DNA from: Piromyces finnis finn
Taxonomy: Eukaryota; Fungi; Neocallimastigomycota
Length of the DNA: 64,000 nucleotides
Direction: 5' to 3'
Assembly (NCBI GenBank): GCA_002104945.1
Contig: MCFH01000019.1
Location: 186,001 to 250,000, forward strand
A model generated the notes under the pieces. The model made no database searches. It was not told the DNA's origin and saw only the letters and a program-made list of their open reading frames with translations. This document shows, in pieces, positions 1-51,490 of the stretch. The position numbers and the translations under genes were made by a program. Position 1 is the first letter of the stretch, and every line of letters begins with the position of its first letter.

Positions 1-1476
1 CTTTTACTTTTTGTTAGCTAACTTGGATAACTTTTAATGTAGACAGATGCAGCAAATGCAGCAAATGCATGCAAATGCAAGCAAATGCAGCCAGCTAATA
101 ATTTAGCTAAATATGAAAAAAAAAGCTGTCTAGTTTTTATGCAAAACAACATGTCTAGTATTAGACATGTACAGCAATCTTTCTTGCAACTCTATTTTAT
201 AAATTAATAATATGATAATAATAATACAATAATAATAATACAATAATAATAATGAATATATTTCTACAATATATAGACAGATGCAGCAAATAATTAATCA
301 CTATGAATGCTCTATTTTATATATATATTATTATATATAAATTATTATATATAAATTATTTATTTAAAGCTGTCTAGTTTTGTTTAAATATATAATCAAT
401 TAATCATTGATAACAATATAATGAAATTGTAATATTTGTTAAAATTTATAAATATTTAATAATTTGCCCTTCTAATATTCAGTAACTCGAACTCTAAGAA
501 ATTCTTTTCTAATCTAGTCAAAAAAAGAAGAAAAAATAAATCTGAATTCCTATATGGCAAATGGCTCATTAAAATAATCTCAAAAGCATACTCTCATGGA
601 TATACTAAAGATATACAATCAAAGATTTATGAATATGACTTTAAAACTACCTTAAAATAAAAAGTACATCGGCAAGATAAATCATGAAATGGACAACGCC
701 TTAACTAAACAATTAAAAAATGTTTATTATTATATAATTATATAATTATAATAATACTATTATTACATTGTATGTTATTGAATTTTCTAATTTTATTAAT
801 TTTACTGAATTTTTACATTTAATTCATATAATCTAATAAATGGAAATAGTCGATCGACCTAGTTAATTTCTATTTTAATAATTAAATATGAATTGATTTA
901 AAAATATATTCATATTTTTGTTTCTATATCACAATCTCACTTGGATGTTTATAAGTATTTTTAATTAACTTGGAAAAAGTACTAATTAAAATATTTATAA
1001 CAAAAAACAATGTAATTGAATAATTAAAAAAATGAATATCAATAAAAATATACAAATTTAAAAAAAATCATTAGAATATTAGTAATATTTTTTTATTTAT
1101 AAATAAATTGAATACTTCTTTTGTTTTGTGTGTGTGTAGGTGTGGTGTGTATTAATATTTTATATTTTAATTTTTATTTTTGTTGTTATTTAAAATATTT
1201 TATAATTATAATATTTCATTTATATATAGAAATAATTTTTTAATAATATTTATATAACAAAAAAAAATAGTTTAAAATACTTTCTTAAAGTTATTTATAT
1301 TCGTTATTGTTATTATTATTGATGTTATTATTGATATTATTATTATTTCCATTTTTTTTCTTTCTACTTTTTCCTTTCATTTTTTAATTATTAGAAAATA
1401 AAGGTATAATCTTGCTTTTATACCAATATTCACTTATGAATCTATAGGTATTTTAAATTGACTTGAAAAAAAGTAC
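1..1476 (+). repeat. Arm 1 (left part; resumes at 7151-7757 after the LINE)
   Basis: Colinear with 11418-12855 and reverse-complementary to ~14379-15824. Confidence 0.93.
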
Positions 1477-1767
1477 CCTCTTGGGAACGTGCCTTCATTT
1501 ATTTAATAAATGTAGTTTCTCAAGGGGGTCTACTCATGCTCATGGTACTGAGAGAGTAGAAAGAATTAAATCCAAGTATTGCGCAATGGATGCTTGGTGC
1601 CCTCTTAGGAACGTGCCTTCATTTATTTAATAATGGAGTTTATCAAGGGGGTCTACTCATGCTCATGGTACTGAGAGAGTAGAAAGAATTAAATCTAAGC
1701 ATTGCGCAATGGATGCTTGGTTAGTCTTTAAGGGAAAATTATTAGGACTAAGCTCATGGTACTGAGC
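1477..1767 (+). repeat. Tandem ~124-bp 5' monomers of the LINE (2 copies plus a partial third)
   Basis: cctcttRggaacgtgccttc starts at 1477 and 1601. gctcatggtactgag occurs at 1538, 1661 and 1752. attgcgcaat occurs at 1578 and 1701. Confidence 0.9.
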
Positions 1768-2359
1768 GATTAAAAAACATTTTATTCATCGAATTAAGTA
1801 TTTGATGAATAAGTTGAATGTTTGATATTCAGGTAAGTTTGTATAGTATTTAATTAGAAGAGTAATACATTTTGTTGCTGTATTTTTTCTTTTATTCATG
1901 TATTCATGTAGTACTACTCTTCTCTTGTAAGAATCCAATGTAGTCAACTTTAGCATTTGCATTGTATTTTTATATTCATGTAGCTATTGTTGTATTGTTT
2001 CTTGTAAGAGACTGATTCACTCTACATCATGTAAAAATACTATTCACAAGCTTTCTGGTGTCGACATTCTTGATTCAAATTTTTTACCAATTTAAATATT
2101 TAATGAAAAGTAAAGTCAAACAATTTTAGTGTCAAAAAGCGATTCGAATTTACTAACAATAAACCAAAATTAGAATTTTTAAAGAAAATTTATAGAATTC
2201 AAAAAAAGAAACTTTAAACAAAGCATCGTAACAATTTTTGTACTATCCAGTACTTTTAAGAAGAGAGAGAGAGACAGATTTTTTTCCATATACGTTATAT
2301 TTATATTTTTTATTAGTATTTATTTTATATTCAATTTTTTTTAATTAGAATTAATTATC

Positions 2360-5300
2360 ATGTCAGTCCTTTATATTAAAGATAAGAATTATATCAGACG
2401 TGGTACCCGGTCTTATGGTATCCCCTTAGATGATATTCGCTCCTTCTTTATCCGTGGTATTCGATCATGGTCAGTAAATATGCTATGGGGAAAACTCGAG
2501 GTTATTCTAGAAGATAAATTTAATTCAGTTATTAGTGTTAAATATTTTCAGACTTTCAATGATCACTTTTTCTTAGTCAAGGTTCATGGTTCATCGAAAG
2601 ATTGTATTAAAATCTTACACATGTTAAAGAAGAAACTTTCAGTTACCTCAATTTCCTTTTCATCTCGTAGTAGAAGGAATCACAAATACACTTTTTCCAC
2701 TCTCAAACGTAAAATTTTAGTTTCTAATAAACATCAACATTCTATTCAACAATCATTCCAACAATCATTTCAACAATCAGTTCAACAATCTCATCAACAA
2801 TCCGATCTTCAACAAGATCTTCAACAAGATCTTCAACAAGTTTCCCATCATGAAAATATTCCAGATCTACAGCTAACACAATTTCAATCTCAACATTCAA
2901 CAATTAATTCTAATAGCTCTATCAACTCTGCTAACAGTTCAATAGTTGATAGTTCTTCAGTTTCACAGCCATCTAGTAATAGTTCTACTTATTCCTCTGA
3001 TGCATCATCCATTAATAATGATGACCTTGATAATAATAATAATAGCAACGATTCTTCCTCATCCAACAAGCCTAATAACTTTTCTTTTTGTCTTAGTTGG
3101 AACACCAATGGGTGGAATCATGAAAAGAGAGATAGTATTAGCTATTTCACAGCTATTTTCAAACCATTATTTTTATGTTTCCAAGAAACTGGTAATGGTT
3201 CTGGATCGAATACAGATTATCCTTGTCGTGTTACTTTGCGAAACTATAGACACTTTTTCAAGAAAGCTGACGAATCAGTTCCTGGAATGAGAGGTTTATA
3301 TTTAGGTTTTCACAATTCGTGTCAAGCCTCACTTGAAAACTTCTCTGGAAAGTATATTATTTCTATTTATACTTTTAGTCTTTGGAATAGATTCAAATGC
3401 TCGATTGGAAATGTTTATATGCCTCATAGTCATCACAACATCTATGTTGATCATGCAAAGTTAGAAGTTCGCTTGTGGTTACAAACTCATTCATCCCATC
3501 CATCGATTCTTGTTGGTGATTTTAATATGTCTAAAGTAAAATTATCCAATTGGTTATCAACTAATGGATTAGGAGATTGGGAAATTCTTCTGCTTAGAGG
3601 GTCGACTATCTCTTGGACTCGAGGTGAACAATCTTCCGACATTGACCATGCTCTTATCAATTTGAAGATGAAAGATCTTATTCACTCAGGATCATTTATA
3701 AATAATTTTTATCCTGTATCAGACCATAAGCCACTTCTTATTAATGGTAAAATTATTCCTATGGAAGATTTTTCTAATGACTTTAATGTTCCTAAGAAAA
3801 TTCTGAAATGGAATAGATTAAAATGTATTGAGGAAAAGGAATCTATTCTCAGTCATAATAAATTCCAAATTCTTTCAGCAAAATTCAACGATCCTAATGT
3901 TTCTACAGATGAACTTTCCAAAGAGTTTACTTCAACTGCTTTTTCAATTGCAGACGAGCTCAGTATTACCTCAGCTAATAATGTTATAAAGTCTTCATTT
4001 CATATTTCACAACAAATTTTTAATCTTCAAAAAATCAAAATGAAGTTGTATAAGAGATTTAAAAAAGAAAGAATTTATGATATAGATGAATTTATTAAAA
4101 GAATTAAAATCTACCGTAAGCTCATTGATTACATCCACAAAAGATGTAATGAATTTAGGAAACAAGAATATCTCCATTGGATTAAAACAGGATGTGAGTA
4201 TATGAAGAGTCATAATCCTAAGAAGGCCTGGAAATGGATTAAGAAAACTGCAAAAATTGGAAAAGATTCTTTCTTTATTGCTCAACCAATTAAAAATAAA
4301 AATGGAGAATTAGTTGTTGCTACGGAAGAACAACTAGATGTGTGGCATGATCATTTCGAAAATCTTGCATCAGATCCAAGTGGTGTAAGTCTTGATTTGG
4401 AACATTGGTATGAAGAACCAACGAATAAACGTTTTTCACTTCCTATGCTTGATGAGTGGGATATCAACCAAGATATTAGTATTGATGAAGTCAAGTCAGC
4501 TATCCTCACTACTCCAAATTATAAAGCATCAGGTCCGAATGGTATTCCAATTGAATTTTACAAAGCATTAATTCCATCAAGTAATGATTCTAATAATGCT
4601 ACAGATAATAATTCTTCCGGTAATACCACTTCAGATAATGATGCTCATGGTTTAAATTTTATTCTTAAATTATTCAACCGTATTTGGGATGGAGATTTCC
4701 CCAACTCATGGAATGAATCCAGTATTGTTTCTATTCCTAAGAAGGGAGATTTGACAGATTGTGATAACTATCGAGGTATATCACTTATCAATAATGGCAT
4801 TAAGTTGATTTCCAAAATTGTCACCACTAGAATCTCAGAATATGGTCTAAAGAATAATTTCATTAGACCTGAACAATTTGGTTTTCGAAAAAAGGAAGAA
4901 AGTATCAGTCTTTTCATTTCAATCCAAGAAATATGCCGTAGACGTCAATTAGATAATAAAGAGACATATTTGGCCTTTTTAGATCTCAGGAAAGCATACG
5001 ATTCAGTCCCAATCGGTAATATTCTCCATAAATTAGATTGTTTAGGAATCCGAGGTAAGAGTTTACAATTTATCAAAAATTTATATTTAACATCTAAGGC
5101 TAATGTCAAATTAGATGGTCAATTCTCGAAATCTTTTGATGTGAAGAAAGGAGTCCGTCAAGGATGCCCTCTTTCTCCTATTCTCTTTAATCTCTTTATT
5201 AATGATATATTTAGAGAGTGCGAAGATCTTGGAGTCAGTTTAGGTGACACTCGATGCTGTGGTGGACTTTTTGCAGATGATATAGTTATTTGTGCTCCAA

Positions 5301-6886
5301 CAAGAGGATGCTTAAAAAAGATGCTTAGAAGAGTTAATGAATGGGCATTGTATAATGAAATGGAATTTGGTATCCAGAAGTGTTCAACGATGGTGATTCG
5401 TCCTGAATCAATAGAAAATCAGAACAAGAGAGATCCAACATTTTACTTAGCAGGACAACCCATTCCAACTACTGATTGCTATACTTATCTTGGTGTTCCA
5501 TTTGATAAGAATTTGTCCCTTAAACCAGTAATTAAAACTCTCAATAACAAGGTTTTGAAAGGACTTTTCTCAGTCAGTAAATTCTTAAGAAATCCTAATA
5601 TTCCTATTCCCTTCAAAAAACTAGTACTTAACTCACAAGTGATTAGCAGAGTTTCATACTTTGCACCATTACTTGGATCCAACAAAGCTAGGTCTAGGAT
5701 TGCTCAGAAGCATGTTAACAAAGGAATACGATGGATTGCCGGAGTTCATAAAGCTGTATCGTTTATATCTTTATACTCTATCTCAAAAGATTTGAATATT
5801 CCTCCATTGTCAGCCAAATGTGCTTTAGCTCAGGTTAGATGTTTTAACAAATGGAAAAACTCAAGTTGTATTATCTCACACCTTGTCAATTACATTCCTA
5901 AATTTAGAAAATACACGTGGTGCAAATCAAGTAGGACACTTGATAAAAAATTAAAGAAGCATGGAGATGTCAAAGCAGTTAAAAACTTTTATTGGAAAGA
6001 TCTCAAAGGGAATTCAATCAAAGCGCAATATTATGATGATAATAAATTTATTGAAACTAAAGATTTTATTAAATTATGTTATGAGTACCCAGAGTTTGCC
6101 TATGGCTTCTACTGGCTATTGAAAGCAAGAAACGGATACAAGTTGGATGCTAGAGTTGCCAAAGCTGCTAAATTTGTTGATCCAGTTTGTCCTAACTACT
6201 GTCCATGTTGCAAGTGTGGAGATCAAAGTATTAAACATTGGTTATTAGATTGTCCAACATTTAGAGATATCCGTATTAAACATTATGATTCCATAGTCCA
6301 TCTATTAAATTTTTTCAGTCAACGTAATTCCAATAGTCCTATCAATAATAATGAAAATGTTAATATCAGTAGAGATAGCAATAACATTAATAGTAATAGT
6401 AACAATAGTAGTAATAACAATAGTAATAGTAACAATAGTAATAATAACAATAGTAGTAATAGAAATAATAATATTAGTAATGATAACAATAGTGAAGATA
6501 ATAATTCTAATTTAGATAGTAATTTAGTTAATGATAGTAATAGTTCTAATAATCCGGTGAATATTAATGTGTATGATTATTCTAGTGTGTGCAGTAAAAT
6601 ATTTAAATTCCTTCTTGGGGGAAGAAGTTTTAACAATATCAATTACAATTCAAGGGAATGGAAAGAACTTTGTAAGCGTCAGATTCAATCTGGTACTAAT
6701 GAAGGAACACCATTCTTGACGGTAACCGCGGAACTTCTAACCAAAATCATGCCTTTTGCTATTGGCCAGCAATGGTCAATGTTCAAAAGGTTTGAAGCAA
6801 CATCCAAGAGCGTCAATGCTGAAGAAACAGTAAGACAGGCCAGGAGAGCCAGCGCAACCAATGGAGATCATAATTTTGTTCCATGA
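2360..6886 (+). CDS. LINE polyprotein, 1508 aa: N-terminal RRM-like domain, Q/S/N-rich linker, APE endonuclease, reverse transcriptase, C-terminal CCHC zinc finger
   Basis: APE motifs: SWNTNG, FQET, NVYMP, VGDFN, IDH, SDH. RT motifs: KASGPNGIP, NYRGISL, EQFGFR, AFLDLRKAYDSV, GVRQGCPLSPILF, LFADD, YTYLG. Zinc finger: CKCGDQSIKHWLLDC preceded by CPC. Confidence 0.97.
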   Translation: MSVLYIKDKNYIRRGTRSYGIPLDDIRSFFIRGIRSWSVNMLWGKLEVILEDKFNSVISVKYFQTFNDHFFLVKVHGSSKDCIKILHMLKKKLSVTSISFSSRSRRNHKYTFSTLKRKILVSNKHQHSIQQSFQQSFQQSVQQSHQQSDLQQDLQQDLQQVSHHENIPDLQLTQFQSQHSTINSNSSINSANSSIVDSSSVSQPSSNSSTYSSDASSINNDDLDNNNNSNDSSSSNKPNNFSFCLSWNTNGWNHEKRDSISYFTAIFKPLFLCFQETGNGSGSNTDYPCRVTLRNYRHFFKKADESVPGMRGLYLGFHNSCQASLENFSGKYIISIYTFSLWNRFKCSIGNVYMPHSHHNIYVDHAKLEVRLWLQTHSSHPSILVGDFNMSKVKLSNWLSTNGLGDWEILLLRGSTISWTRGEQSSDIDHALINLKMKDLIHSGSFINNFYPVSDHKPLLINGKIIPMEDFSNDFNVPKKILKWNRLKCIEEKESILSHNKFQILSAKFNDPNVSTDELSKEFTSTAFSIADELSITSANNVIKSSFHISQQIFNLQKIKMKLYKRFKKERIYDIDEFIKRIKIYRKLIDYIHKRCNEFRKQEYLHWIKTGCEYMKSHNPKKAWKWIKKTAKIGKDSFFIAQPIKNKNGELVVATEEQLDVWHDHFENLASDPSGVSLDLEHWYEEPTNKRFSLPMLDEWDINQDISIDEVKSAILTTPNYKASGPNGIPIEFYKALIPSSNDSNNATDNNSSGNTTSDNDAHGLNFILKLFNRIWDGDFPNSWNESSIVSIPKKGDLTDCDNYRGISLINNGIKLISKIVTTRISEYGLKNNFIRPEQFGFRKKEESISLFISIQEICRRRQLDNKETYLAFLDLRKAYDSVPIGNILHKLDCLGIRGKSLQFIKNLYLTSKANVKLDGQFSKSFDVKKGVRQGCPLSPILFNLFINDIFRECEDLGVSLGDTRCCGGLFADDIVICAPTRGCLKKMLRRVNEWALYNEMEFGIQKCSTMVIRPESIENQNKRDPTFYLAGQPIPTTDCYTYLGVPFDKNLSLKPVIKTLNNKVLKGLFSVSKFLRNPNIPIPFKKLVLNSQVISRVSYFAPLLGSNKARSRIAQKHVNKGIRWIAGVHKAVSFISLYSISKDLNIPPLSAKCALAQVRCFNKWKNSSCIISHLVNYIPKFRKYTWCKSSRTLDKKLKKHGDVKAVKNFYWKDLKGNSIKAQYYDDNKFIETKDFIKLCYEYPEFAYGFYWLLKARNGYKLDARVAKAAKFVDPVCPNYCPCCKCGDQSIKHWLLDCPTFRDIRIKHYDSIVHLLNFFSQRNSNSPINNNENVNISRDSNNINSNSNNSSNNNSNSNNSNNNNSSNRNNNISNDNNSEDNNSNLDSNLVNDSNSSNNPVNINVYDYSSVCSKIFKFLLGGRSFNNINYNSREWKELCKRQIQSGTNEGTPFLTVTAELLTKIMPFAIGQQWSMFKRFEATSKSVNAEETVRQARRASATNGDHNFVP

Positions 6887-7126
6887 TAAAATTTTGATCT
6901 TTGGCTCGGTGTCCCATTGGAAGTCAAATACAATTATTATACTTTAGTATAATAGTGGCTTTCTTACTTTAATTAAAATTACTAGAATACATTATACCCA
7001 ATTTTTATTCATTTGTGTTTATTTAAACATATTTTTTTTTATTTTTATTTTAATTTTAATTTTTTTATTACATGTATTATAATTTTAATTAAATTAATAA
7101 TAAAGTTTAAAATATTTGATGCCGTT

Positions 7127-7157
<31 letters not shown>

Positions 7158-7757
7158 AAAAAATCAATATAACTGAATATTTAAAAGAAGAGTATATCAA
7201 TAAAAATATCATTTTAATAAAATATTTAAAAATATGTTTAAAAAAATATTTAAAAAACATGAATAAATGAAATATTAATGGTTTATGTGTATATATTAAT
7301 GGTTTTAAATTGCATCTTTATTAACAAATATTATTTTAGTATTAATTTTATTTTATTTTATTTTTATACTTATTATGTATAATGTATTATAGAATGAAAA
7401 TAATATAATATATATAATTTTTATTATATTAACAATAATTAGATAATAATTGAAAATAAAAGAAAACCATTTTTTAAACTATAATTTATTTAACTAATGA
7501 TTTTAAACACAATTTCAAAAAACTAAAATGTTAATTTCACCTTTTTTTTTTTTCTAAATAAAATTTCTATATTAAAAAAGAAGCTAGTTCATTTTTAATT
7601 TATAAATACAATTCATTAATACAAATAAATTTTAACAGAAAAGGTTATATAATGTTATTTTAAAAAAATAATAAAAAACTATTTTTTACAAATATAAAAA
7701 ATTAACTCTTTTATTTATATAAACCATTAATCCTTTTGATATATTAATATTATAACT

Positions 7758-8023
7758 TTTATATATAGTAAGACTTTTATAAAAATTTAAACTAAATTTT
7801 TTAATTCTTTTTTTTCATCTTCATTGCAATATTACAATATGTGATAATTCAAATAATCTTTTAATATTGATCTTTTACTCATATCAGCTTTAATATATAA
7901 TAACATTTTGATTATACTAATGTAAATAGTAAATTAGAATTTGTGGTTAATAAAAATTAAAATATAAATTAAGGAATATAGTGGTATAGTAAAAATTTCA
8001 AATAAATATTTTTTATTAAAGAG
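7758..8023 (+). repeat. Loop S1 between arms 1 and 2; its reverse complement recurs at 13489-13754
   Basis: Flanked by ttataact (7750-7757) and agttataa (8024-8031). The same sequence is inverted in the next unit. Confidence 0.85.
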
Positions 8024-10590
8024 AGTTATAAAAATGTTATTAATATATCAAAAGGATTAATAGTTAGTATAAATAAAAGGGTTAATTTTTTATATTTTTA
8101 AAAAATAGTTTTTTTTATTTACTTTTTGCTTATTTTTTATTTTTTTTTTCGAAAATAACATTATATAACCTTTTCTGTTAAAAATTATGTGTATTTATGA
8201 ATTGTATTTATAAATATATAATGAAATAACTTCCTTTTTTAATATAGAAATTTTACTTACAAAAAAAAAGGTGAAATTTACATTTTAATTAAATAAAATA
8301 TAGTTTAAAAATAGTGTTTTCTTTTATTTTCAATTAGTATTTCTATTAGTATCTAATTATTGTTAATATAAAAAAATTATATATATTATATTATTTTCAT
8401 TCTATAATACATTATACATAATAAGTATAAAAATAAAATAAAATAAAATTAATACTTAAATAATATTTGTTAATAAAGATGCAATTTAAACCCATTAATA
8501 AATACACCTAAACCATTAACATTTCATTTATTCATGTTTTTTAAATATTTTTTTAAATATATTTTTAAATATTTTATTAAAATGATATTTTTATTGATAT
8601 ACTCTTCTTTTAAATATTCAGTTATATTGATTTTTTTGTTAAAAATATTTATATTAGTACTTTTCCTCAAATTAATTTAAAATATATATAGATTCATAAG
8701 TGGATGTTGGTATAAAAACAAGATTATACTTTTATTTTCTAATAATTAAAAAATGAAAGGAAAAAGGAGAAAGAAAAAAAAGTAAATAATAATAATAATA
8801 TCAATAATAACATCAATAATAATAACAATAACGAATATAAATAACTTTAAGAAAGTATTTTAAACTATATATTTTTTTTTTCGTTATATAAATATTATTA
8901 AAAGATTATTACTATATATAAAAATAAAAATTAAAATATAAAATATTAATACACACCACACCTACACACACACAAAACAAAAGAAGTATTCAATTTATTT
9001 ATAAATAAAATATTACTAATATTCTAATGATTTTTTTTTAAATTTGTATATTTTTATTGATATTCATTTTTTTAATTATTCAATTACATTGTTTTTTTTT
9101 TTTATAAATATTTTAATTAGTATTTTATTCAAATTAATTAAAAATACTTATAAACACCCAAGTGAGATGGTGATTTAGAAACAAAAATATGAATATATTT
9201 TTAAAATCAATTCATATTTAATTATTAAAATAGAAATTTAACTAGATCAACTATTTCCATTTATAAGATTATATGAATTAAATGTAAAAATTCAGTAAAA
9301 TTAATAAAATTAGAAAATCCAATATCATATAATATAATAATAGTATTATTAAAATTATATAAATATATAATAATAAACATTTTTTTAATTGTTTAGTTAA
9401 GGTGTTGTCCATTTCATGATTTATCTTGCCGATGTACTTTTTATTTTAAGGTAGTTTTAAAGTCATATTCATAAATCTTTGATTGTATATCTTTAGTATA
9501 TCTAGATAGTATGCTTTTGAGATTAATTTAATGAGGCATTTGCCATATAGGAATTCAGATTTATTTTTTCTTCTTTTTTTGACTAGATTAGAAAAGAATT
9601 TCTTAGAGTTCGAGTTACTGAATATTAGAAGGGCAAATTATTAAATATTTATAAATTTTAACAAATACTACAATTTCATTATATTGTTATCAATGATTAA
9701 TTGATTATACATTTAAACAAAACTAGACAGCTTTAAATAAATAATTTATATATAATAATTTATATATAATAATTTATATATAAAATAGAGCATTCATAGT
9801 GATTAATTATTTGCTGCATCTGTCTATATATTGTAGAAATATATTCATTATTATTATTGTATTATTATTATTGTATTATTATTATCATATTATTAACTTA
9901 TAAAATAGAGTTGCAAGAAAGATTGCTGTACATGTCTAATACTAGACATGTTGTTTTGCATAAAAACTAGACAGCTTTTTTTTTCATATTTAGCTAAATT
10001 ATTAGCTGGCTGCATTTGCTTGCATTTGCATGCATTTGCTGCATTTGCTGCATCTGTCTACATTAAAAGTTATCCAAGTTAGCTAACAAAAAGTAAAAGA
10101 GATAAAGTGATTGCAGTGCATGTCTAATACTAGACGTGTGGGTTCTCGTTGTTGATAAGTTTAAAATCATTATAACGATATAATATTATAATATTTGAAT
10201 GAATATTAAAATATTATAAAGCTATAACAATACTATATAAAATGATAATTATGAAATAAATTCATTTGAATTATCTTTTTTTGTTTTTTTTGTTTTTTGT
10301 TAAATTCTTTTTATATTTCTTTCTTTTCATGGATAACATGATTTTTCAAATTTATTTGATTCCTTTTTTTTTCTTTTATACTTTTTTTTTTATTTTAATA
10401 AAATTTTAAATTATCTTAAAAAAATTTTATTTATTTGATAATAATTAAATTACTTGACCTTGACAATATGACATTTATAACATGTACCACCTTTTCATAA
10501 TTAAAATATTAATAATTTATATTATGTTGTTAATATATAATTTCTCTTTTTGGTTATTTTTTCTATTAAATATAATTAAAGTTTAATTAT
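8024..10590 (-). repeat. Arm 2 (inverted)
   Basis: Reverse complement of 10931-13488. Confidence 0.92.
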
Positions 10591-10930
10591 TTTATATTAT
10601 TAATTAGTATAGTCTTACACCAAAAAATAATTATTATAATAATAATAAAAATGTTTCAGGTAATCCTTTTAATAATTATTTTTTATTCATGAAAAGATAA
10701 AAGTTTATATATTTTATATATATAATGAAATTTTTATTGTACACAAATTTAAAAGTAAATATATAAAAAATATATAATATATTTATTAAATTTATTAAAT
10801 AAAAAAAAAAAACATTTTCATTTTGTTAATTCAATATACTATTAATGATTAATGTAAATAACGAATTTAAATTTTGTAGTTAATAAAAATTAGTGAATTG
10901 AGGTGGTAGAGTTAAAATTTTAAATTTAAT
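10591..10930 (+). repeat. Loop S2 (centre of the giant palindrome); direct copy at ~16313-16653; boundaries approximate
   Basis: gtcttacacc occurs at 10612 and 16334. gaggtggtagagtt is present in both copies in the same orientation. Confidence 0.85.
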
Positions 10931-13488
10931 TTTTAAATTGTAATATAATTTAATAGAAAAAATAACCAAAAAGAGAAATTATATATTAACAGCATAATAT
11001 AAATTATTAATATTTTAATTATGAAAGGGTGGTAAATGTTATAAATGTTATATTATCAAAGTCAAGTAATTTAATTATTATCAAATAAATACTTTTTTAA
11101 AATAATTTGAAAATTTATTAAAATAAAAAAAAAAGTATAAAAGAAAAAAAAAAGGAATCAAATAAATTTAAAAAATCATGTTATCCATGAAAAGAAAGAA
11201 ATATAAAAAGAATTTAACAAAAAACAAAAAAAACAAAAAAAGATAATTCAAATGAATTTATTTCATAATTATCATTTTATATAGTATTGTTATAGCTTTA
11301 TAATATTTTAATATTCATTCAAATATTATAATATTATATCGTTATAATGATTTTAAACTTATCAACAACGAGAACCCACACGTCTAGTATTAGACATGCA
11401 CTGCAATCACTTTATCTCTTTTACTTTTTGTTAGCTAACTTGGATAACTTTTAATGTAGACAGATGCAGCAAATGCAGCAAATGCATGCAAATGCAAGCA
11501 AATGCAGCCAGCTAATAATTTAGCTAAATATGAAAAAAAAAGCTGTCTAGTTTTTATGCAAAACAACATGTCTAGTATTAGACATGTACAGCAATCTTTC
11601 TTGCAACTCTATTTTATAAGTTAATAATATGATAATAATAATACAATAATAATAATACAATTATAATAATGAATATATTTCTACAATATATAGACAGATG
11701 CAGCAAATAATAATCACTATAAATGCTCTATTTTATATATAAATTATTATATATAAATTATTATATATAAATTATTTATTTAAAGCTGTCTAGTTTTGTT
11801 TAAATATTTAATCAATTAATCATTGATAACAATATAATGAAATTGTAGTATTTGTTAAAATTTATAAATATTTAATAATTTTCCCTTCTAATATTCAGTA
11901 ACTCGAACTCTAAGAAATTCTTTTCTAATCTAGTCAAAAAAAGAAGAAAAAATAAATCTGAATTCCTATATGGCAAATGGCTCATTAAATTAATCTCAAA
12001 AGCATACTATCTAGATATACTAAAGATATACAATCAAAGATTTATGAATATGACTTTAAAACTACCTTAAAATAAAAAGTACATCGGCAAGATAAATCAT
12101 GAAATGGACAACACCTTAACTAAACAATTAAAAAAATGTTTATTATTATATATTTATATAATTTTAATAATACTATTATTATATTATATGATATTGATTT
12201 TCTAATTTTATTAATTTTACTGAATTTTTACATTTAATTCATATAATCTTATAAATGGAAATAGTTGATCTAGTTAATTTCTATTTTAATAATTAAATAT
12301 GAATTGATTTTAAAAATATATTCATATTTTGTTTTTTTTATAACCATCTCACTTGGATGTTTATAAGTATTTTTAATTAATTTGAATAAAATACTAATTA
12401 AAATATTAATAAAAAAAAAAAACAATGTAATTGAATAATTAAAAAAATGAATATCAATAAAAATATATAAATTTAAAAAAAAAATCATTAGAATATTAGT
12501 AATATTTTTTTATTTATAAATAAATTGAATACTTCTTTTGTTTTGTGTGTGTGTAGGTGTGGTGTGTATTAATATTTTATATTTTAGTTTTTATTTTTAT
12601 ATATAGAAATAATTTTTTAATAATATTTATATAACAAAAAAAAATAGTTTAAAATACTTTCTTAAAGTTATTTATATTCGTTATTGTTATTATTATTGAT
12701 GTTATTATTGATATTATTATTATTATTTACTTTTTTTTCTTTCTCCTTTTTCCATTTATTTTTTAATTATTAAAAAATAAAGGAATAATCTTGCTTTTAT
12801 ACCAATATTCACTTATGAATCTATAGGTATTTTAAATTAATTTGAGGAAAAGTACTAATATAAATATTTTTAACAAAAAAATCAATATAACTGAATATTT
12901 AAAAGAAGAGTATATCAATAAAAATATCATTTTAATAAAATATTTAAAAATATATTTAAAAAAATATTTAAAAAACATGAATAAATGAAATATTAATGGT
13001 TTATGTGTATATATTAATGGTTTTAAATTGCATCTTTATTAACAAATATTATTTAAGTATTAATTTTATTTTATTTTATTTTTATACTTATTATGTATAA
13101 TGTATTATAGAATGAAAATAATATAATATATATAATTTTTTTATATTAACAATAATTAGATACTAATAGAAATACTAATTGAAAATAAAAGAAAACACTA
13201 TTTTTAAACTATATTTTATTTAATTAAAATGTAAATTTCACCTTTTTTTTTGTAAGTAAAATTTCTATATTAAAAAAGGAAGTTATTTCATTATATATTT
13301 ATAAATACAATTCATAAATACACATAATTTTTAACAGAAAAGGTTATATAATGTTATTTTCGAAAAAAAAAATAAAAAATAAGCAAAAAGTAAATAAAAA
13401 AAACTATTTTTTACAAATATAAAAAATTAACCCTTTTATTTATATAAACCATTAATCCTTTTGATATATTAATAACATTTTTATAACT
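10931..13488 (+). repeat. Arm 3 (complete, uninterrupted reference arm)
   Basis: Bounded by S2 and inverted S1; matches all the other arms. Confidence 0.92.
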
Positions 13489-13754
13489 CTCTTTAATAAA
13501 AAATATTTATTTGAAATTTTTACTATACCACTATATTCCTTAATTTATATTTTAATTTTTCTTAACCACAAATTCTAATTTATTATTGACATTAGTATAA
13601 TCAAAATGTTATTATATATTAAAGCTGATATGAGTAAAAGATCAATATTAAAAGATTATTTGAATTATCACATATTGTAATATTGCAATGAAGATGAAAA
13701 AAAAGAATTAAAAAATTTAGTTTAAATTTTTATAAAAGTCTTACTATATATAAA

Positions 13755-16312
13755 AATTATAATATTATAATAACAAAAGGATTAATGGTTTATATAAATA
13801 AAAGGGTTAATTTTTTATATTTTTAAAAAATAGTTTTTTTTATTTACTTTTTGTTTATTTTTTATTTCTTTTTTCGAAAATAACATTATATAACCTTTTC
13901 TGTTAAAAATTATGTGTATTTATGAATTGTATTTATAAATATATAATGAAATAACTTCCTTTTTTAATATAGAAATTTTACTTACAAAAAAAAGGTGAAA
14001 TTTACATTTTAATTAAATAAAATATAGTTTAAAAATAGTGTTTTCTTTTATTTTCAATTAGTATTTCTATTAGTATCTAATTATTGTTAATATAAAAAAA
14101 TTATATATATTATATTATTTTCATTCTATAATACATTATACATAATAAGTATAAAAATAAAGTAAATAAAATTAATACTTAAATAATATTTTTTAATAAA
14201 GATGCAATTTAAACCCATTAATAAATACACCTAAACCATTAACATTTCATTTATTCATGTTTTTTAAATATTTTTTTAAATATATTTTTAAATATTTTAT
14301 TAAAATGATATTTTTATTGATATACTCTTCTTTTAAATATTCAGTTATATTGATTTTTTTTTAAAAATCTTTATATTAGTACTTTTTTTCAAGTCAATTT
14401 AAAATACCTATAGATTCATAAGTGAATATTGGTATAAAAGCAAGATTATTCCTTTATTTTTTAATAATTAAAAAATAAATGGAAAAAGGAGAAAGAAAAA
14501 AAAGTAAATAATAATAATAATATCAATAATAACATCAATAATAATAACAATAACGAATATAAATAACTTTAAGAAAGTATTTTAAACTATATATTTTTTT
14601 TTCGTTATATAAATATTATTAAAAGATTATTACTATATATAAAAATAAAAATTAAAATATAAAATATTAATACACACCACACCTACACACACACAAAACA
14701 AAAGAAGTATTCAATTTATTTATAAATAAAAAAATATTACTAATATTCTAATGATTTTTTTTTAAATTTATATATTTTTATTGATATTCATTTTTTTAAT
14801 TATTCAATTACATTGTTTTTTTTTATAAATATTTTAATTAGTATTTTATTCAAATTAATTAAAAATACTTATAAACATCCAAGTGAGATGGTTATAAAAA
14901 AAACAAAATATGAATATATTTTTAAATCAATTCATATTTAATTATTAAAATAGAAATTAACTAGGTCGATCGACTATTTCCATTTATTAGATTATATGAA
15001 TTAAATGTAAAAATTCAGTAAAATTAATAAAATTAAAAAATCCAATATCATATAATATAATAATAGTATTATTAAAATTATATAATTATATAATAATAAA
15101 CATTTTTTTAATTGTTTAGTTATGGTGTTGTCCATTTCATGATTTATCTTGCCGATGTACTTTTTATTTTAAGGTAGTTTTAAAGTCATATTCATAAATC
15201 TTTGATTGTATATCTTTAGTATATCCATGAGAGTATGCTTTTGAGATTAATTTAATGAGCCATATATCATATAGGAATTCAGATTTATTTTTTCTTCTTC
15301 TTTTTTTGACTAGATTAGAAAAGAATTTCTTAGAGTTCGAGTTACTGAATATTAGAAGGGCAAATTATTAAATATTTATAAATTTTAACAAATACTACAA
15401 TTTCATTATATTGTTATCAATGATTAATTGATTATACATTTAAACAAAACTAGACAGTTTAAATAAATAATTTATATATAATAATTTATATATAATAATT
15501 TATATATAAAATAGAGCATTCATAGTGATTAATTATTTGCTGCATCTGTCTATATATTGTAGAAATATATTCATTATTATTATTGTATTATTATTATTGT
15601 ATTATTATTATCATATTATTAACTTATAAAATAGAGTTGCAAGAAAGATTGCTGTACATGTCTAATACTAGACATGTTGTTTTGCATAAAAACTAGACAG
15701 CTTTTTTTTTCATATTTAGCTAAATTATTAGCTGGCTGCATTTGCTTGCATTTGCATGCATTTGCTGCATTTGCTGCATCTGTCTACATTAAAAGTTATC
15801 CAAGTTAGCTAACAAAAAGTAAAAGAGATAAAGTGATTGCAGTGCATGTCTAATACTAGACGTGTGGGTTCTCGTTGTTGATAAGTTTAAAATCATTATA
15901 ACGATATAATATTATAATATTTGAATGAATATTAAAATATTATAAAGCTATAACAATACTATAAAATGATAATTATGAAATAAATTCATTTGAATTATCT
16001 TTTTTTGTTTTTTTTGTTTTTTGTTAAATTCTTTTTATATTTCTTTCTTTTCATGGATAACATGATTTTTTAAATTTATTTGATTCCTTTTTTTTTTCTT
16101 TTATACTTTTTTTTTTATTTTAATAAATTTTCAAATTATTTTAAAAAAGTATTTATTTGATAATAATTAAATTACTTGACCTTGACAATATGACATTTAT
16201 AACATTTACCACCCTTTCATAATTAAAATATTAATAATTTATATTATGTTGTTAATATATAATTTCTCTTTTTGGTTATTTTTTCTATTAAATATAATTA
16301 AAGTTTAATTAT
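13755..16312 (-). repeat. Arm 4 (inverted; carries the empty site of the LINE insertion)
   Basis: Reverse complement of arms 1 and 3. Shares diagnostic alleles with arm 1 (ctctcatgga, gtcgatcgac, aattgacttg). Confidence 0.92.
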
Positions 16313-16653
16313 TTTATATTATTAATTAGTATAGTCTTACACCAAAAAATAATTATTATAATAATAATAAAAATGTTTCAGGTAATCCTTTTAATAATTA
16401 TTTTTTATTCATGAAAAGATAAAAGTTTATATATTTTATATATATAATGAAATTTTTATTGTACACAAATTTAAAAGTAAATATATAAAAAATATATAAT
16501 ATATTTATTAAATTTATTAAATAAAAAAAAAAAAACATTTTCATTTTGTTAATTCAATATACTATTAATGATTAATGTAAATAACGAATTTAAATTTTGT
16601 AGTTAATAAAAATTAGTGAATTGAGGTGGTAGAGTTAAAATTTTAAATTTAAT

Positions 16654-18472
16654 TTTTAAATTGTAATATAATTTTATAGTAAGAATTAAAACAAAAAGAG
16701 AAATTATATATTATAAATTATAAATTATTAATATTTTAATTATGAAAGGGTGGTAAATGTTATAAATGTTATATTATCAAAGTCAAGTAATTTAATTATT
16801 ATCAAATAAATACTTTTTTAAAATAATTTGAAAATTTATTAAAATAAAAAAAAAGTATAAAAGAAAAAAAAAAGGAATCAAATAAATTTAAAAAATCATG
16901 TTATCCATGAAAAGAAAGAAATATAAAAAGAATTTAACAAAAAACAAAAAAACAAAAAAAGATAATTCAAATGAATTTATTTCATAATTATCATTTTATA
17001 GTATTGTTATAGCTTTATAATATTTTAATATTCATTCAAATATTATAATATTATATCGTTATAATGATTTTAAATTTATCAACAACGAGAACCCACACGT
17101 CTAGTATTAGACATGCACTGCAATCACTTTATCTCTTTTACTTTTTGTTAGCTAACTTGGATAACTTTTAATGTAGACAGATGCAGCAAATGCAGCAAAT
17201 GCAGCAAATGCATGCAAATGCAAGCAAATGCAGCCAGCTAATAATTTAGCTAAATATGAAAAAAAAAAGCTGTCTAGTTTTTATGCAAAACAACATGTCT
17301 AGTATTAGACATGTACAGCAATCTTTCTTGCAACTCTATTTTATAAGTTAATAATATGATAATAATAATACAATAATAATAATACAATAATAATAATGAA
17401 TATATTTCTACAATATATAGACAGATGCAGCAAATAATAATCACTATAAATGCTCTATTTTATATATAAATTATTATATATAAATTATTATATATAAATT
17501 ATTTATTTAAAGCTGTCTAGTTTTGTTTAAATATTTAATCAATTAATCATTGATAACAATATAATGAAATTGTAGTATTTGTTAAAATTTATAAATATTT
17601 AATAATTTTCCCTTCTAATATTCAGTAACTCGAACTCTAAGAAATTCTTTTCTAATCTAGTCAAAAAAAGAAGAAAAAATAAATCTGAATTCCTATATGG
17701 CAAATGGCTCATTAAATTAATCTCAAAAGCATACTATCTAGATATACTAAAGATATACAATCAAAGATTTATGAATATGACTTTAAAACTACCTTAAAAT
17801 AAAAAGTACATCGGCAAGATAAATCATGAAATGGACAACACCATAACTAAACAATTAAAAAATGTTTATTATTATATAATTATATAATTTTAATAATACT
17901 ATTATTACATTGTATGTTATTGAATTTTCTAATTTTATTACAGTTGATTCATATAAAATAAAAAGAAATAGTTGACCTAATTAATTTCTATTTTAATAAT
18001 TAAATATGAATTAATTTTAAAAATATATTCATATTTTTGTTTTTTTTATAACCATCTCACTTGGGTGTTTATAAGTATTTTTAATTAACTTGGAAAAAGT
18101 ACTAATTAAAATATTTATAACAAAAAGCAATGTAATTGAATAATTAAAAAAAATGAATATCAATAAAAATATATAAATTTAAAAAAAAATCATTAGAATA
18201 TTAGTAATATTTTTTTATTTATAAATAAATTGAATACTTCTTTTGTTTTGTGTGTGTAGGTGTGGTCTGTATTAATATTTTATATTTTAGTTTTTATTTT
18301 TGTTGTTATTTAAAATATTTTATAATAATAATATTTCATATACATATGGAATTATTTTTTAATAATTTATAGAACAAAAAAAAAAAATAGTTTAAAATAC
18401 TTTCTTAAAGTTATTTATATTCGTTATTGTTATTATTTGATGTTATTATTTATTTTTTTCTTTCTCCTTTTC
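16654..18472 (+). repeat. Arm 5 (partial, increasingly diverged beyond ~17940)
   Basis: Matches arm 3 for ~1.8 kb, then runs into unique T-rich sequence. Confidence 0.88.
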
Positions 18473-18843
18473 TTTTTTTTTTTTTTTTTTTTTTTCAGTT
18501 TTTATCTTTTTATTTATTTATTCTATTTATTTTATTTTTTTCTTTCTTTCTATTTTTGATTTTATTTTTAATTGATAAAAGTATGTATTCGAAATTTATT
18601 TATTTATTATTCTTTGTTTTTTTATCAAAAAATTATTAAATAACAAATAAATAAATAAAAAGAAAAAAAAAATAAAAATAAAAAGAAAGAGAAAAAAAAA
18701 AAAGTTAAAAAAAAAAAAAGAAAAAAATAGAAAAAATTATTTACTAAATATAAATATAAATTTAGAATGAAATATAATGTTAAATTTTTTTTTAAAAAAA
18801 AAAATAAAAATTATATATATATTATAAACTAATTAAAATTAAA

Positions 18844-21800
18844 TTAATTTTTAAATGGATTATATCCAGGTTTGGCGGTTTTAAAGGTATTGGTAGTAGC
18901 ATCAGTAGCTTGAGTATTATTTGTTTTGATAGTATAGAAACTTTCGGCAGCAGAAGCCATACTACTAGTATCATTAAAAATATTTTGTATTGGACTGTCG
19001 TAGTCATTTCTTTTACCTGATGTTTTAACAGTATGGAAACTTTCGGCGGCAGAAGCCATACTACTAGTATCATTAAAAATATTTTGTACTGGACTGTCGT
19101 AGTCATTTCTTTTACCTGATGTTTTAACAGTATGGAAACTTTCGGCGGCAGAAGCCATACTACTAGTATCATTAAAAATATTTTGTACTGGACTGTCGTA
19201 GTCATTTCTTTTACCTGATGTTTTAACAGTATGGAAACTTTCGGCGGCAGAAATAAAACTATTGGTATCATTAAAAATGTTTTGGGATAAAGGTGAGATA
19301 CCTTCATTATCATTTCTACTGATTTCTGATGCATAAGAATTTCTTAAGAATGGATTAGTAAATTGACTGCCAACTGAAGCTGCTCTACTAATAAAGCTAT
19401 CATCAGCAGCGGATTGGAATGTTGTTGTACTTTTAATACTATCACTATGCATTATCGAATGAGGATTTCCTAATGATAAATTATCCATAGTTGGTGAAAC
19501 GACATTAGCTGAAGAGGGTAAGGATTGACTTGTCAATTGTGCTGAATTTATACTATAAAAGTTTGAACTACCAGCGGAAGAAAATTGACTACCACTACGA
19601 GAAATTATATTTTCAACTTTAATTGGTGAGGTAACTGGATTGACGCAGGAATGGAAGGAATTAATGGAGATATTGTCATTATTTGGATCATTGTATGAGA
19701 ATGACGTATGGGCAACCTCACTTGTATTATCACGTTCAACATTAGAAAAGTTAAAATCAGTAGGGACATTGTTAAATTTTCTTGTGGATTCCTTTTCGTC
19801 TAACATATCAGATGTAGCTGAATAGTAGGAAGTTCCTCCCGTCTTAACACTAGATTTTGAACCATTACAATTTGGCGTACGGAACACATTGTTCGGTTTA
19901 GGTAGTGGAGGAACAAAGAATGGATCATTTTCTAAATCAAATTCTTCCATCTTCATGTCGTCTATTGGATTAGAAGTTACTGAAGAAGCAGCTGAAAAAT
20001 ATGAAGTTTGATCACTTTCATTATTATATTTATTTTGAAGGTTATTTTGGAATTGACGGTACTTTTGTTTAATATCATCCAAACGCTCAGAATAATTGGA
20101 AGTACTGGTACTTGAACTATTCAAGGTATTTTTGGTTTTGGATGTACGGAATGAGAAATCGGATGAATTATCATTGGTCAAATTTTTAGAGGCAAACTCC
20201 GGTGTTGGTGGAGGAATAGCATCTTCATCAAAGAGTAATTCATTAAATTGAGGACGTTCCTTAAAGGTATCTGAGTCAATTTTAAGAGGATCAATACTCA
20301 TTAAGGAAGCCTTACTTTGTTTACCAAGTAGTGGCTTTTTGTATATATTTCTAATATTATTTTCCGGAAATTCCGGTATTTCAAAGCTCGTATCTTTTTT
20401 AGCACTACTAAAGGATGCTTCTGCAAGAGGAGGAAGTTCATCATTCTCAACACCATTTTTAACAGTACTACTAGTGCTATTACTACGAATGGAAATACGA
20501 TTGATAACAGGTGCTTCTTTAATTGCCTTATCAGCTAATAATTCATTTTCCTTCTTATGATCGGAAGGGAAAGTATTATCATTTCTGGCTTGTTTATCTA
20601 ATTGTTTTATTGTGTCATTAGAAAATATTGAACTGGAAGAAGTGTTATTGATATGATGTGTTTTATTATCAGGAATCATATCATAATTCTTTGAATTTCT
20701 ATTCTTTATCTTTGTAATAAATGGTGCTATATAAGGAATTGACTTTCTATTCTTTTCCAACTTAACATCCATTTCATTATCAATGAGTTCGTGATTAACT
20801 TCATCTTCGTTTGATGGACTATCAGTGAGCATTTGATTAACAACAATGATTTGTTGAGGATAAGGCTTTGGAATATTCTTTGTTTGTACAAGTCCAGCTT
20901 TAGCATCATTACTAACGTTTTGGTTCTTGCTTGAAAGAAGGGGAGCCTTACTATTTTTGTAAAGAACTTCACTAGGTGGAACAATTTCCTCTAAGCTTCC
21001 ATCGACATATTTATGAGCAGCCAACTTTTCACTTCCAAATAAAGTACTTTCATTAGTATAAGCAGGTGATGTAATATTTTTTGAATTTTCGTCAACCATA
21101 GTAGCACTGGTATCCTTAAGTTGAGTGTAATTATTATTTGTAGTAGTATCGGCATTGCGAACTTCGTTAGTTTTATTAGAATGTTCCGTTTTGATAATTA
21201 AACTTTTTTGAGATAAATTTGATTGAGTAGTAAATTTACTACTGAAGCTTTGCTTACTTTCAAGAGTTACATTACTAAATCTACTATTACTATTTCTAAT
21301 ACCTACATTTAAATCAATATCAAAATCTTCGTCACTTAATTTAAATTCTTCCCTTGAACTATGAATAGATTGTATAGATTGATCTCTATTCTTTTTCTTT
21401 TTCACCATAAAAAGAAGAGAAGCTAAAATTGCCAACAATACAAAAACACCAATACCAATTAAAATAGGCATATAATTAAATTTGTCTTTATCATTCATTT
21501 TAGCACTTTCAGCATTTTGAACAATTTTATTTGTTTCACCAAAGATATCTTTAGAAATAATATCTTTAGAAAGGGTATCATTACAATATACATTGCCATT
21601 AGCATAAAGGCGATCATTAAAAATCACTGGTGCTGAAATAAATGATGATCCAGCAGCTACAACACCAATAGATTTAATTTTTTGAATATTGAAATTCTTA
21701 TCATATTGATAGAAATTAATACCATCCTTTGTAGATGAGATAAAACTCCTATCCTTTACAAGTACAATGGAATCTTTAGAACAGGCAACAGTTTTATTTT

Positions 21801-25118: not shown

Positions 25119-25170
25119 ATAATAAACCAAATCTAAAAATATCAAATTATTATTAGATTTGGTTTATTAT
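25119..25170. repeat. Perfect 18-bp inverted repeat with a 16-nt spacer
   Basis: ataataaaccaaatctaa (25119-25136) and ttagatttggtttattat (25153-25170). Confidence 0.8.

Positions 25171-47405: not shown

Positions 47406-49459
<2,054 letters not shown>

Positions 49460-50450: not shown

Positions 50451-50840
<390 letters not shown>

Positions 50841-51290: not shown

Positions 51291-51490
<200 letters not shown>

Follow-up and report, generated by a model that had tools for sequence, protein, structure and literature searches.

The locus lies on contig MCFH01000019.1 of the anaerobic gut fungus Piromyces finnis, where a stretch of 64 kb (about positions 186001–250000), referred to below as the window, was analysed. 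The left part of the window is occupied by at least five copies of a 2.55-kb AT-rich sequence, the arm, in alternating orientation. Self-BLAST together with a repeat search gave the order arm1(+) / S1 / arm2(−) / S2 / arm3(+) / S1 inverted / arm4(−) / S2 / arm5(+, truncated) across window positions 1–18504, reproducing the alternating arms and the two types of spacer, one of them flipped, described in the original prediction. That prediction had bounded the block at 1 and 18472; its layout stands, with different limits. Arm1 enters the window at alignment column 490, arm and array both extending leftwards past the window edge, and the right end falls at about 18504. The features of the array and its right flank are as follows.

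1–1476, plus strand: arm1, proximal part, 92–94% identical to arms 2–5
1477–7150, plus strand: full-length L1-like LINE within arm1, 5.67 kb, splitting the arm
7151–7763, plus strand: arm1, S1-proximal part, the most decayed arm segment, its last 400 columns 63–77% identical to arms 2–4
7764–8026, unstranded: spacer S1a, 263 bp, head-to-head junction
8027–10586, minus strand: arm2, 2560 bp
10587–10932, unstranded: spacer S2a, 346 bp, tail-to-tail junction and centre of the through-spacer palindrome
10933–13485, plus strand: arm3, 2553 bp
13486–13748, unstranded: spacer S1b, reverse complement of S1a (260/263)
13749–16308, minus strand: arm4, 2560 bp
16309–16655, unstranded: spacer S2b, direct copy of S2a (346/347)
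16656 to about 18504, plus strand: arm5, truncated at about column 1900 of 2553, with divergence growing towards its end
18505–18843, unstranded: right boundary zone, a T/C-rich tract, then a complementary A/G-rich tract (18640–18740), then the stop codon of the neighbouring gene
18844–22896, minus strand: flanking single-exon gene, 1350 aa, without a Pfam domain, outside the array

Arms 2–4 are 97.8–98.0% identical at aligned bases and the outer arms 1 and 5 are more diverged (5–10%), giving an overall range of 90–98%. Kilobase arm matches at 92–98% identity cannot have arisen by chance. The array also shows a direct period of 5722 bp, with 8027–12633 matching 13749–18342 at 96.3% in self-BLAST, and the two copies of S2 are identical except for one indel. 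Immediately around S1a the inverted repeat has decayed to about 75% identity over the adjoining 400 bp, and the homology of arm5 fades inside the T/C-rich tract at the right end. When the LINE is removed, a palindrome of 2 x 4.9 kb becomes apparent, running through S1 on both sides of S2a and pairing LINE-free coordinates 1–4912 with 10151–5259 (94.7% over 4966 columns), its left side being bounded by the window edge. Its centre, at about 10759 in the window, agrees with the nested palindrome previously placed at ~10758, and the LINE that had been noticed within the block is confirmed at 1477–7150, in arm1.

At about 11300–11600, arm3 contains a slightly GC-richer island in which a (ATGCAGCAA)n repeat lies between two copies of the 24-mer GTCTAGTATTAGACATGYACWGCA. 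This 24-mer is arm-specific, occurring nine times in the arms against zero expected by chance. Furthermore, S1 and S2 may share an 87-bp segment, with a score of 58 compared with a dinucleotide-shuffle mean of 40 ± 5.5 and maximum of 61. The similarity lies only marginally above the shuffles, and any common origin of the two spacers would be tentative.

The insertion in arm1 was identified as an L1-like LINE from its coding region and its 3' end. A single intact open reading frame of 1508 aa (2360–6886) encodes an APE endonuclease (PF03372, aa 245–456, E = 1.2e-5) and a reverse transcriptase (RVT_1, aa 792–1047, E = 1.6e-35), two copies of a 123-bp repeat lie at the 5' end (1476–1721), and the element finishes in a poly(A) tail of 24 nt (7127–7150). 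No clear target-site duplication was seen at the insertion; instead, about 11 bp of the target are missing. We found no gene record for the LINE protein, and the homologues of the LINE that were found lie on contigs of 5.6 kb or less.

Apart from the LINE, the block had been described as having no coding capacity, and our searches bear this out. No ORF in the arms exceeds 72 aa, a Pfam search of the arms gave no significant match, an Rfam search gave none at the gathering threshold and none at E ≤ 1, and neither tRNAs nor telomere repeats were detected in them. Ten small arm ORFs had no match in a collection of 15 billion proteins. The P. finnis genome is among the most AT-rich eukaryotic genomes known, and at 16.2% GC the array has a host-like composition, two neighbouring intergenic regions having 15.3% and 16.9%. 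An ODIRA amplicon is expected to include a replication origin. We know of no replication-origin model for the Neocallimastigomycota; an AT-rich origin consensus of any kind would match array sequence at 16% GC.

Searches for relatives in mobile-element collections were equally empty. GTCTAGTATTAGACATGYACWGCA had no match in JGI metagenome contigs or IMG/VR, and a BLAST search with the 5.7-kb unit returned nothing meaningful from plasmids or phages. These results bear on the idea that the array is an integrated concatemer of a small non-coding episome, either hairpin-ended (‘dog-bone’) or an inverted dimer. In such a molecule S1 and S2 would have closed the two ends of a 2.55-kb duplex stem as loops, the equivalent of an inverted-dimer circle of 5.7 kb, and it would once have replicated autonomously before recombining into the chromosome. 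Replication of a molecule built in this way yields exactly the unit [arm S1 arm' S2], an intermediate also included in the ODIRA model (PMC4689423). One loop, S1, is found in both orientations, the right junction cuts the arm at an arbitrary point, as illegitimate integration would, and the 87-bp segment is possibly common to both loops. However, this S1/S2 similarity is marginal, a replication gene is absent, the composition is indistinguishable from host intergenic DNA, and the plasmid, phage, viral and metagenome collections hold nothing similar. Moreover, the 2–10% divergence of the arms and the LINE insertion imply long chromosomal residence. We consider an episomal source improbable, and one derived from this very locus would merge with the explanation favoured below. 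With a composition equal to that of neighbouring intergenic DNA, no relatives in mobile-element or metagenome collections and no gene of its own, the array is more readily taken for intergenic DNA of the host, amplified in place, than for a foreign element of unknown kind. The anatomy originally proposed is upheld; the unknown-element interpretation attached to it finds less support.

The divergence between the arms was examined further. Pairs of inner arms differ by 51–56 substitutions (about 2%), about half of them transitions, and by only 8–16 indel events. Variants shared among arms 1–4 support all three possible groupings in clustered tracts, with 14 sites joining arms 1 and 4 against 2 and 3, 10 joining 1 and 2 against 3 and 4, and 9 joining 1 and 3 against 2 and 4. 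Arms 1 and 5 share nine sites, and a further pattern of 16 sites sets arms 2 and 4 against arms 3 and 5. Divergence of about 2% between inner arms, combined with clustered and conflicting variant tracts, indicates that the arms are real paralogues shaped by gene conversion rather than the product of chimeric reads or assembly.

An assembly or library artefact could take two forms, namely missed-adapter palindromic PacBio reads, which look like alternating inverted copies, or a mis-resolved copy number or orientation within a genuine repeat. The assembly is an early PacBio one, from a period when reads may not span 18 kb, and assembly errors could affect how many copies there are and which way S1 points. 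Against this, polished missed-adapter or chimeric reads would not yield arm differences so rich in substitutions and so poor in indels, nor do they account for the phylogenetically structured mosaic of variants, for outer arms diverged by 5–10%, or for a complete LINE with its poly(A) tail in exactly one arm. The spacers consist of ordinary sequence, 263 and 346 bp long, without an adapter, and the array as a whole contains no SMRTbell-adapter-like sequence. In addition, the locus lies 186 kb inside an 857-kb contig. Given the spectrum of divergence and the mosaic of variants that the arms share, we rejected an artefact as the principal explanation and regard it as very unlikely; the array looks to be a genuine chromosomal feature of P. 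finnis.

An inverted pair around a short loop is also the architecture of foldback elements, and the array might represent a non-autonomous transposon of the foldback type whose terminal inverted repeats are very long, or a satellite descended from such a transposon, tandemly amplified here and with copies elsewhere in the genome. Other taxa are reported to have satellites composed of inverted elements, and the more diverged monomers at the edge, as satellite arrays show, and the extension of the array past the window would suit such an origin. However, arm-like DNA is absent both from the other 45.5 kb of the window and from 47 kb fetched from three related genomes. The identity of the S2 copies shows that the units were duplicated jointly and not inserted independently, and neither a terminus nor a target-site duplication can be defined, arm5 ending within the arm. 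Foldback terminal repeats typically carry internal tandem sub-repeats, which the arms lack. We consider this origin unlikely.

To the right, the array is followed after 340 bp by the end of the 1350-aa gene, which is apparently intact and is conserved in Piromyces sp. E2, Anaeromyces robustus and Neocallimastix californiae. Orthologous neighbourhoods were fetched from Piromyces sp. E2 (L002, more than half of it N gaps) and A. robustus (L003), and in both the orthologue is cut by the end of the locus. The N. californiae contig stops at the orthologue, and orthologues of the gene were located on contigs of at most 5.6 kb.

The array, a gene-free interval of at least 18.5 kb, was also considered as an inverted-repeat centromere of a P. 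finnis chromosome, or as part or core of one, in which kinetochore chromatin would occupy spacers and arms and the inverted repeats would contribute to specifying or preserving the domain. This reading is drawn solely from resemblance to the inverted-repeat centromeres of Komagataella, Candida tropicalis and Schizosaccharomyces pombe. Centromeres of that kind would be defined by a single such locus on each chromosome, by occupancy with CenH3 or kinetochore proteins and by a cold spot of transcription. The 2.55-kb arm is close in size to the 2–2.7-kb inverted repeats of K. phaffii, and the spacer flips as the K. phaffii mid regions do (PMC5010909). The absence of genes and the presence of a LINE insertion would fit, and the roughly 93 kb of anaerobic-fungus DNA that was sampled contains no other inverted repeats of 300 bp or more, which shows that the structure is not ubiquitous. 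Our literature search found no published centromere description for the Neocallimastigomycota, hence none that contradicts the reading, and the claim that a centromere of this kind would be new for the group stands.

Set against these points are features of the array itself. At least five arms are visible where an inverted-repeat centromere has a single near-identical pair; the candidate cores measure 263 and 346 bp, compared with a unique core of at least 1 kb in that class (about 1 kb in K. phaffii, 2–10 kb in C. tropicalis); and arm identity, at 90–98%, falls short of virtual identity (PMC5010909). In composition the array matches ordinary intergenic DNA, the end of an intact conserved gene is only 340 bp distant, and the LINE-free array, at 12.8 kb, is little longer than the nearby intergenic regions of 6.5–7.1 kb. 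Furthermore, with a genome that we take to be about 56 Mb, the prior chance of a 64-kb window holding a centromere is a few percent. We therefore judge a centromere at this position to be unlikely.

The explanation we favour, and to which we give roughly an even chance, is an endogenous inverted amplification arising through fold-back or ODIRA-type replication template switching, with unequal exchange (the 5.72-kb period), conversion between arms and inversion of S1 taking place afterwards. Both the origin in a replication error and the order of events are inferred. The amplification would have started from some 2.55 kb of unremarkable AT-rich intergenic DNA that was copied in alternating orientations, S1 and S2 being the loops of the inverted junctions. 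The number of copies may then have grown in 5.72-kb increments, each a unit [arm- S2 arm+ S1], through unequal homologous exchange between like-oriented arms; this duplication of units is supported by the 5722-bp period at 96.3%, the near-identical S2 copies and the 16 sites that unite arms 2 and 4 against 3 and 5. Gene conversion would later have exchanged sequence among the arms, and a crossover between the inverted arms flanking S1 probably flipped one copy of that spacer, the two processes together producing the 10-kb palindrome around S2a. The edge arms would have escaped homogenization and decayed, with the LINE landing in arm1 after that.

Products of ODIRA are described as inverted triplications at interstitial sites ‘or multiples of 2n+1’, in which all head-to-head junctions are of one type and all tail-to-tail junctions of another (PMC4689423). 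Both junction types are present here, S1 twice (260/263, one copy flipped) and S2 twice (346/347), and five arms are visible in the order + − + − +, with the array running off the left window edge. The count 2n+1 = 5 refers to the visible arms, the left end lying beyond the window; we predict that the array stops no more than about 1 kb from the start of the window, which would bring the total to five arms. Co-linearity with the flank is lacking, as arm5 ends at about column 1900 of 2553 without passing through S1 into flanking sequence, which is unlike a pristine ODIRA product and would call for a subsequent deletion or another course of events. ODIRA junctions lie at short interrupted repeats whose loops are generally shorter than 263 or 346 bp, so that spacers of this length count against an ODIRA origin, as does the absence of any amplified gene that would explain retention. 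We assign no cellular function to the array and prefer to view it as a structural variant that is tolerated and active in recombination, in an interval free of genes.

If the array did arise by local inverted amplification, it would be a preserved natural example of an ODIRA or fold-back event in a very AT-rich eukaryotic genome, old enough for later events to have left their traces in it, namely a mosaic of converted tracts, an inverted spacer, decayed edges and a captured retrotransposon. In a fungus of interest to biotechnology, it would moreover mark a locus that is prone to recombination and difficult to assemble. Should the centromere reading prove true, this would be the first centromere for the Neocallimastigomycota and an independent origin of the inverted-repeat architecture outside the Ascomycota. 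It would offer a first handle on chromosome segregation and on stable vector design in the anaerobic gut fungi, which to our knowledge have no such genetic tools.

Compared with known systems, the array resembles ODIRA or tandem-inversion-duplication amplicons such as yeast SUL1 and human DUP-TRP/INV-DUP, which are likewise interstitial, consist of alternating copies with a single junction type of each kind and can expand further by homologous exchange (PMC4689423). As in those amplicons, the visible copy number is odd and the outer copies share one orientation, being here also the most diverged. Unlike them, the array contains no selected gene, has junction loops of 263 and 346 bp and a truncated right outer copy, and is old, having diverged by 2–10% and received a LINE.

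With the inverted-repeat centromeres of K. phaffii, C. tropicalis and S. pombe it shares kilobase inverted repeats (2–2.7 kb in K. phaffii), a flipping middle, which in K. phaffii is documented to flip by recombination between 2-kb inverted repeats, and an absence of genes (PMC5010909). Those centromeres each have one repeat pair, cores of at least 1 kb, near-identical arms and demonstrated CenH3 binding (PMC5010909), whereas the present array has at least five arms, spacers of 0.26–0.35 kb and 90–98% identity.

Mammalian sex chromosomes likewise carry large palindromes with long inverted arms around a unique spacer, and the mosaic in which variants are shared among the present arms suggests the same arm-to-arm gene conversion. 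Mammalian palindromes carry genes in arms that are at least 99.9% identical, kept similar by conversion, and range from tens of kilobases to megabases, whereas the arms described here are non-coding, 2.55 kb long and arranged in a tandem series. Finally, the opposite orientations of S1a and S1b recall, as a comparison from general knowledge, the flip-flop of the yeast 2-micron circle and of plastid genomes, in which a unique segment between inverted repeats occurs in both orientations; unlike these, the array is chromosomal and has neither a recombinase nor genes.

Repeat searching and BLAST self-comparison recovered the layout of the original prediction, in which 2.55-kb AT-rich segments (arms) alternate in orientation and are joined head-to-head across a spacer S1 and tail-to-tail across a spacer S2. 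An array of at least five such non-coding arms is almost certainly real.

Features of the array, located by repeat search and BLAST self-comparison (window coordinates)
1-1476 plus 7151-7763: arm1, split by an L1-like retrotransposon (LINE)
7764-8026: spacer S1a
8027-10586, minus strand: arm2
10587-10932: spacer S2a
10933-13485, plus strand: arm3
13486-13748: spacer S1b
13749-16308, minus strand: arm4
16309-16655: spacer S2b
16656 to ~18504, plus strand: arm5

S2b repeats S2a directly (346/347 identical), and S1b matches S1a in reverse complement (260/263 identical), so that symmetry about S2a extends through S1 on either side. In coordinates counted with the LINE taken out, 1-4912 pairs with 10151-5259 at 94.7% identity over 4966 columns; the centre of this palindrome falls at window ~10759, in agreement with the ~10758 predicted, and its left extent is limited solely by the window end. 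BLAST self-comparison also shows the sequence repeating directly every 5722 bp (8027-12633 versus 13749-18342, 96.3%). Position 1, where the interval given originally starts, is no boundary of the array; its left end lies outside the window, which begins at column 490 of the arm1 alignment. On the right, arm5 is cut at approximately column 1900 of 2553, and the boundary (18449-18740) carries a T/C-rich tract with a complementary A/G-rich tract ~150 bp on. These low-complexity tracts are capable of pairing as a hairpin, and fold-back events have been proposed to start from such pairs; coincidence in a 16% GC genome could equally explain them. The inverted repeat around S1a has decayed to ~75% identity adjoining the spacer. 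An 87-bp segment of 72% identity is common to S1 and S2 (7918-8003 versus 10850-10925), adjoining the following arm in each case, with a marginal local score of 58 (dinucleotide shuffles, 40 ± 5.5, maximum 61); if this similarity is real, both junction loops would share a common origin.

Over aligned bases, arms 2, 3 and 4 are mutually 97.8–98.0% identical; the identity of arms 1 and 5 to these three is 90–95%. The inner pairs differ by 51–56 substitutions, around half of them transitions, and by just 8–16 indel events, whereas long-read error would be expected to consist mostly of indels. Shared variants, lying in clustered tracts, support all three pairings of arms 1–4 (1+4 versus 2+3, 14 sites; 1+2 versus 3+4, 10; 1+3 versus 2+4, 9); a further 16 sites group arms 2+4 against arms 3+5, and 9 common sites set arms 1+5 against the inner three. 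Judged from sequence, this mosaic is the product expected from repeated duplication and gene conversion between paralogues. It would not arise from read chimerism or from the collapse of an assembly. The locus lies 186 kb inside MCFH01000019.1 (857,073 bp), and no sequence resembling the SMRTbell adapter query used was found in the spacers. The array is thus very probably a real feature, its exact copy number and spacer orientation being those of the assembly.

The lack of coding capacity in the arms, as predicted, was borne out. The longest ORF within 7145-18600 is 72 aa, and the array ORFs tested gave no significant Pfam match; Rfam gave none in the window at the gathering threshold, nor in one full unit at E≤1, and no tRNAs or telomere repeats were found. 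The arm is plain 16% GC DNA with one small GC-richer island (~11300-11600 in arm3, up to 35% GC), where a 24-nt motif occurs on either side of an (ATGCAGCAA)n repeat.

The LINE within arm1 (1477-7150) is a complete non-LTR retrotransposon with a 123-bp repeat in two copies at its 5′ end, a single intact ORF of 1508 aa (APE-type endonuclease, aa 245-456; reverse transcriptase, aa 792-1047) and a 24-nt poly(A) tail. On these features it looks potentially active. Approximately 11 bp of target are missing at the insertion site, which shows no clear target-site duplication. Its presence in one arm only implies that the arms were already separate genomic copies before it arrived. Homologues in the protein collection also carry both domains; the nearest are at most 63% identical, on contigs of ~2.6–5.6 kb, and GCA_002104945.1 has no gene annotation for any copy. 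A related fragment at 59474-60741, 5′-truncated and internally deleted, is 83–85% identical to 5315-6132 and 6674-7119 of the LINE, with no arm sequence alongside.

The MCFH accession is that of Piromyces finnis strain Pirfi3, a horse isolate among the anaerobic gut fungi of the Neocallimastigomycota (PMC6712302). DNA of the window is nuclear and eukaryotic (GC 13–33% in 2-kb bins), with pieces of apparently intron-split genes for a WD40 protein, a PX/PB1/SH3 protein and the large subunit of DNA primase. Long (AAT)n/(ATT)n microsatellites of 65–130 units (47926-48169, and in opposite orientation 50451-50841 and 51293-51486) flank exons of a TPR-like gene and cause most of the self-BLAST noise. 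One further gene lies beside the array:

18844-22896 (record 204844-208896), minus strand: single-exon ORF of 1350 aa, sole record MCFH01000019.1

This match places the window at record ~186001-250000. The 1350-aa product lacks any Pfam domain and is fast-evolving (orthologues 46–57% identical); a 99-bp tandem repeat (18922-19284, minus strand; 3.7 copies, 95% identity) encodes 33-aa repeats near the C-terminus. This gene and a 530-aa gene are divergent in P. finnis (18844-31631), whereas both orthologues in Anaeromyces robustus MCFG01000281.1 share a strand, 8.3 kb apart (10001-11542, 19872-21542), indicating rearrangement adjoining the array position.

The GC content of the array without the LINE (16.2%) is close to that of the two adjoining intergenic regions (15.3% and 16.9%). 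No arm-like DNA was found in the other 45.5 kb of the window, or in loci from Piromyces sp. E2 and A. robustus, where the flanking-gene orthologue is cut by the locus end, and Neocallimastix californiae, whose contig ends at the gene. The AT-rich intergenic DNA of Piromyces sp. E2 is largely unassembled (12,021 of 21,563 bases of KZ151112.1 are N), so arrays of this kind would be invisible there. An arm-specific 24-mer went unmatched in IMG/VR and in the JGI metagenome contigs, plasmids and phages offered nothing meaningful for the 5.7-kb unit, and genes for replication or transposition are absent from the array. Within the window, the related-genome loci and these collections, there is thus no sign of a foreign origin for the arm. 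An integrated hairpin or inverted-dimer episome would be structurally equivalent to an intermediate of ODIRA, a replication-based inverted amplification, the sole difference being the source of the DNA; the host-like composition and the absence of relatives point to a local source and argue against the episome. A foldback-type transposon or satellite is likewise disfavoured, the S2 copies being identical, termini lacking and further copies absent from the DNA examined (the rest of the window and the related-genome loci).

Arm size, the flipping spacer, the gene-free interval and the LINE resemble an inverted-repeat centromere. The other DNA sampled from anaerobic fungi (~93 kb) contains no inverted repeat of at least 300 bp. 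Structures of this sort are therefore not found everywhere, and the centromere reading retains some probability. Published inverted-repeat centromeres have one repeat pair, cores of at least 1 kb and virtually identical arms (PMC5010909), none of which is seen here; their further defining features are CenH3 occupancy and a single locus per chromosome (PMC5010909). No literature on centromeres or Hi-C maps in Neocallimastigomycota was found. On structure we consider a centromere improbable; unproven as it is, the possibility makes up most of the remaining interest.

The most economical explanation of the array is an old inverted amplification of endogenous DNA, later reshaped by recombination. 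Under the ODIRA model, regressed forks become ligated where short interrupted inverted repeats lie, and the hairpin-capped 'dog-bone' so freed replicates to form an inverted-dimer circle; when the circle integrates by homology, the outcome is inverted triplications 'or multiples of 2n+1', and origin-independent fold-back models give the same structures (PMC4689423). Replication-based inverted amplification is the class of event from which alternating copies joined by one head-to-head and one tail-to-tail junction arise. The outer arms are the most diverged and the inner three homogenised, a pattern consistent with this class. Inverted amplification would have been followed by expansion through unequal exchange with a 5.72-kb period, supported by the identical S2 copies and the sites grouping arms 2+4 against 3+5; we put the chances of this origin at about even. 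One crossover between the flanking 2.5-kb inverted arms would suffice to flip S1, the process that flips the mid regions of Komagataella phaffii centromeres (PMC5010909). As each spacer is present twice, it is unremarkable for one pair to agree in orientation and the other to be opposed.

Five arms are visible here, the outer two of these in one orientation. Unlike in a pristine ODIRA product, the spacers of 263 and 346 bp are longer than ODIRA junction loops are known to be, arm5 ends inside the arm at a T/C-rich tract, and there is no amplified gene to account for retention. The array is a fresh example of an already known kind of structure rather than a new kind.
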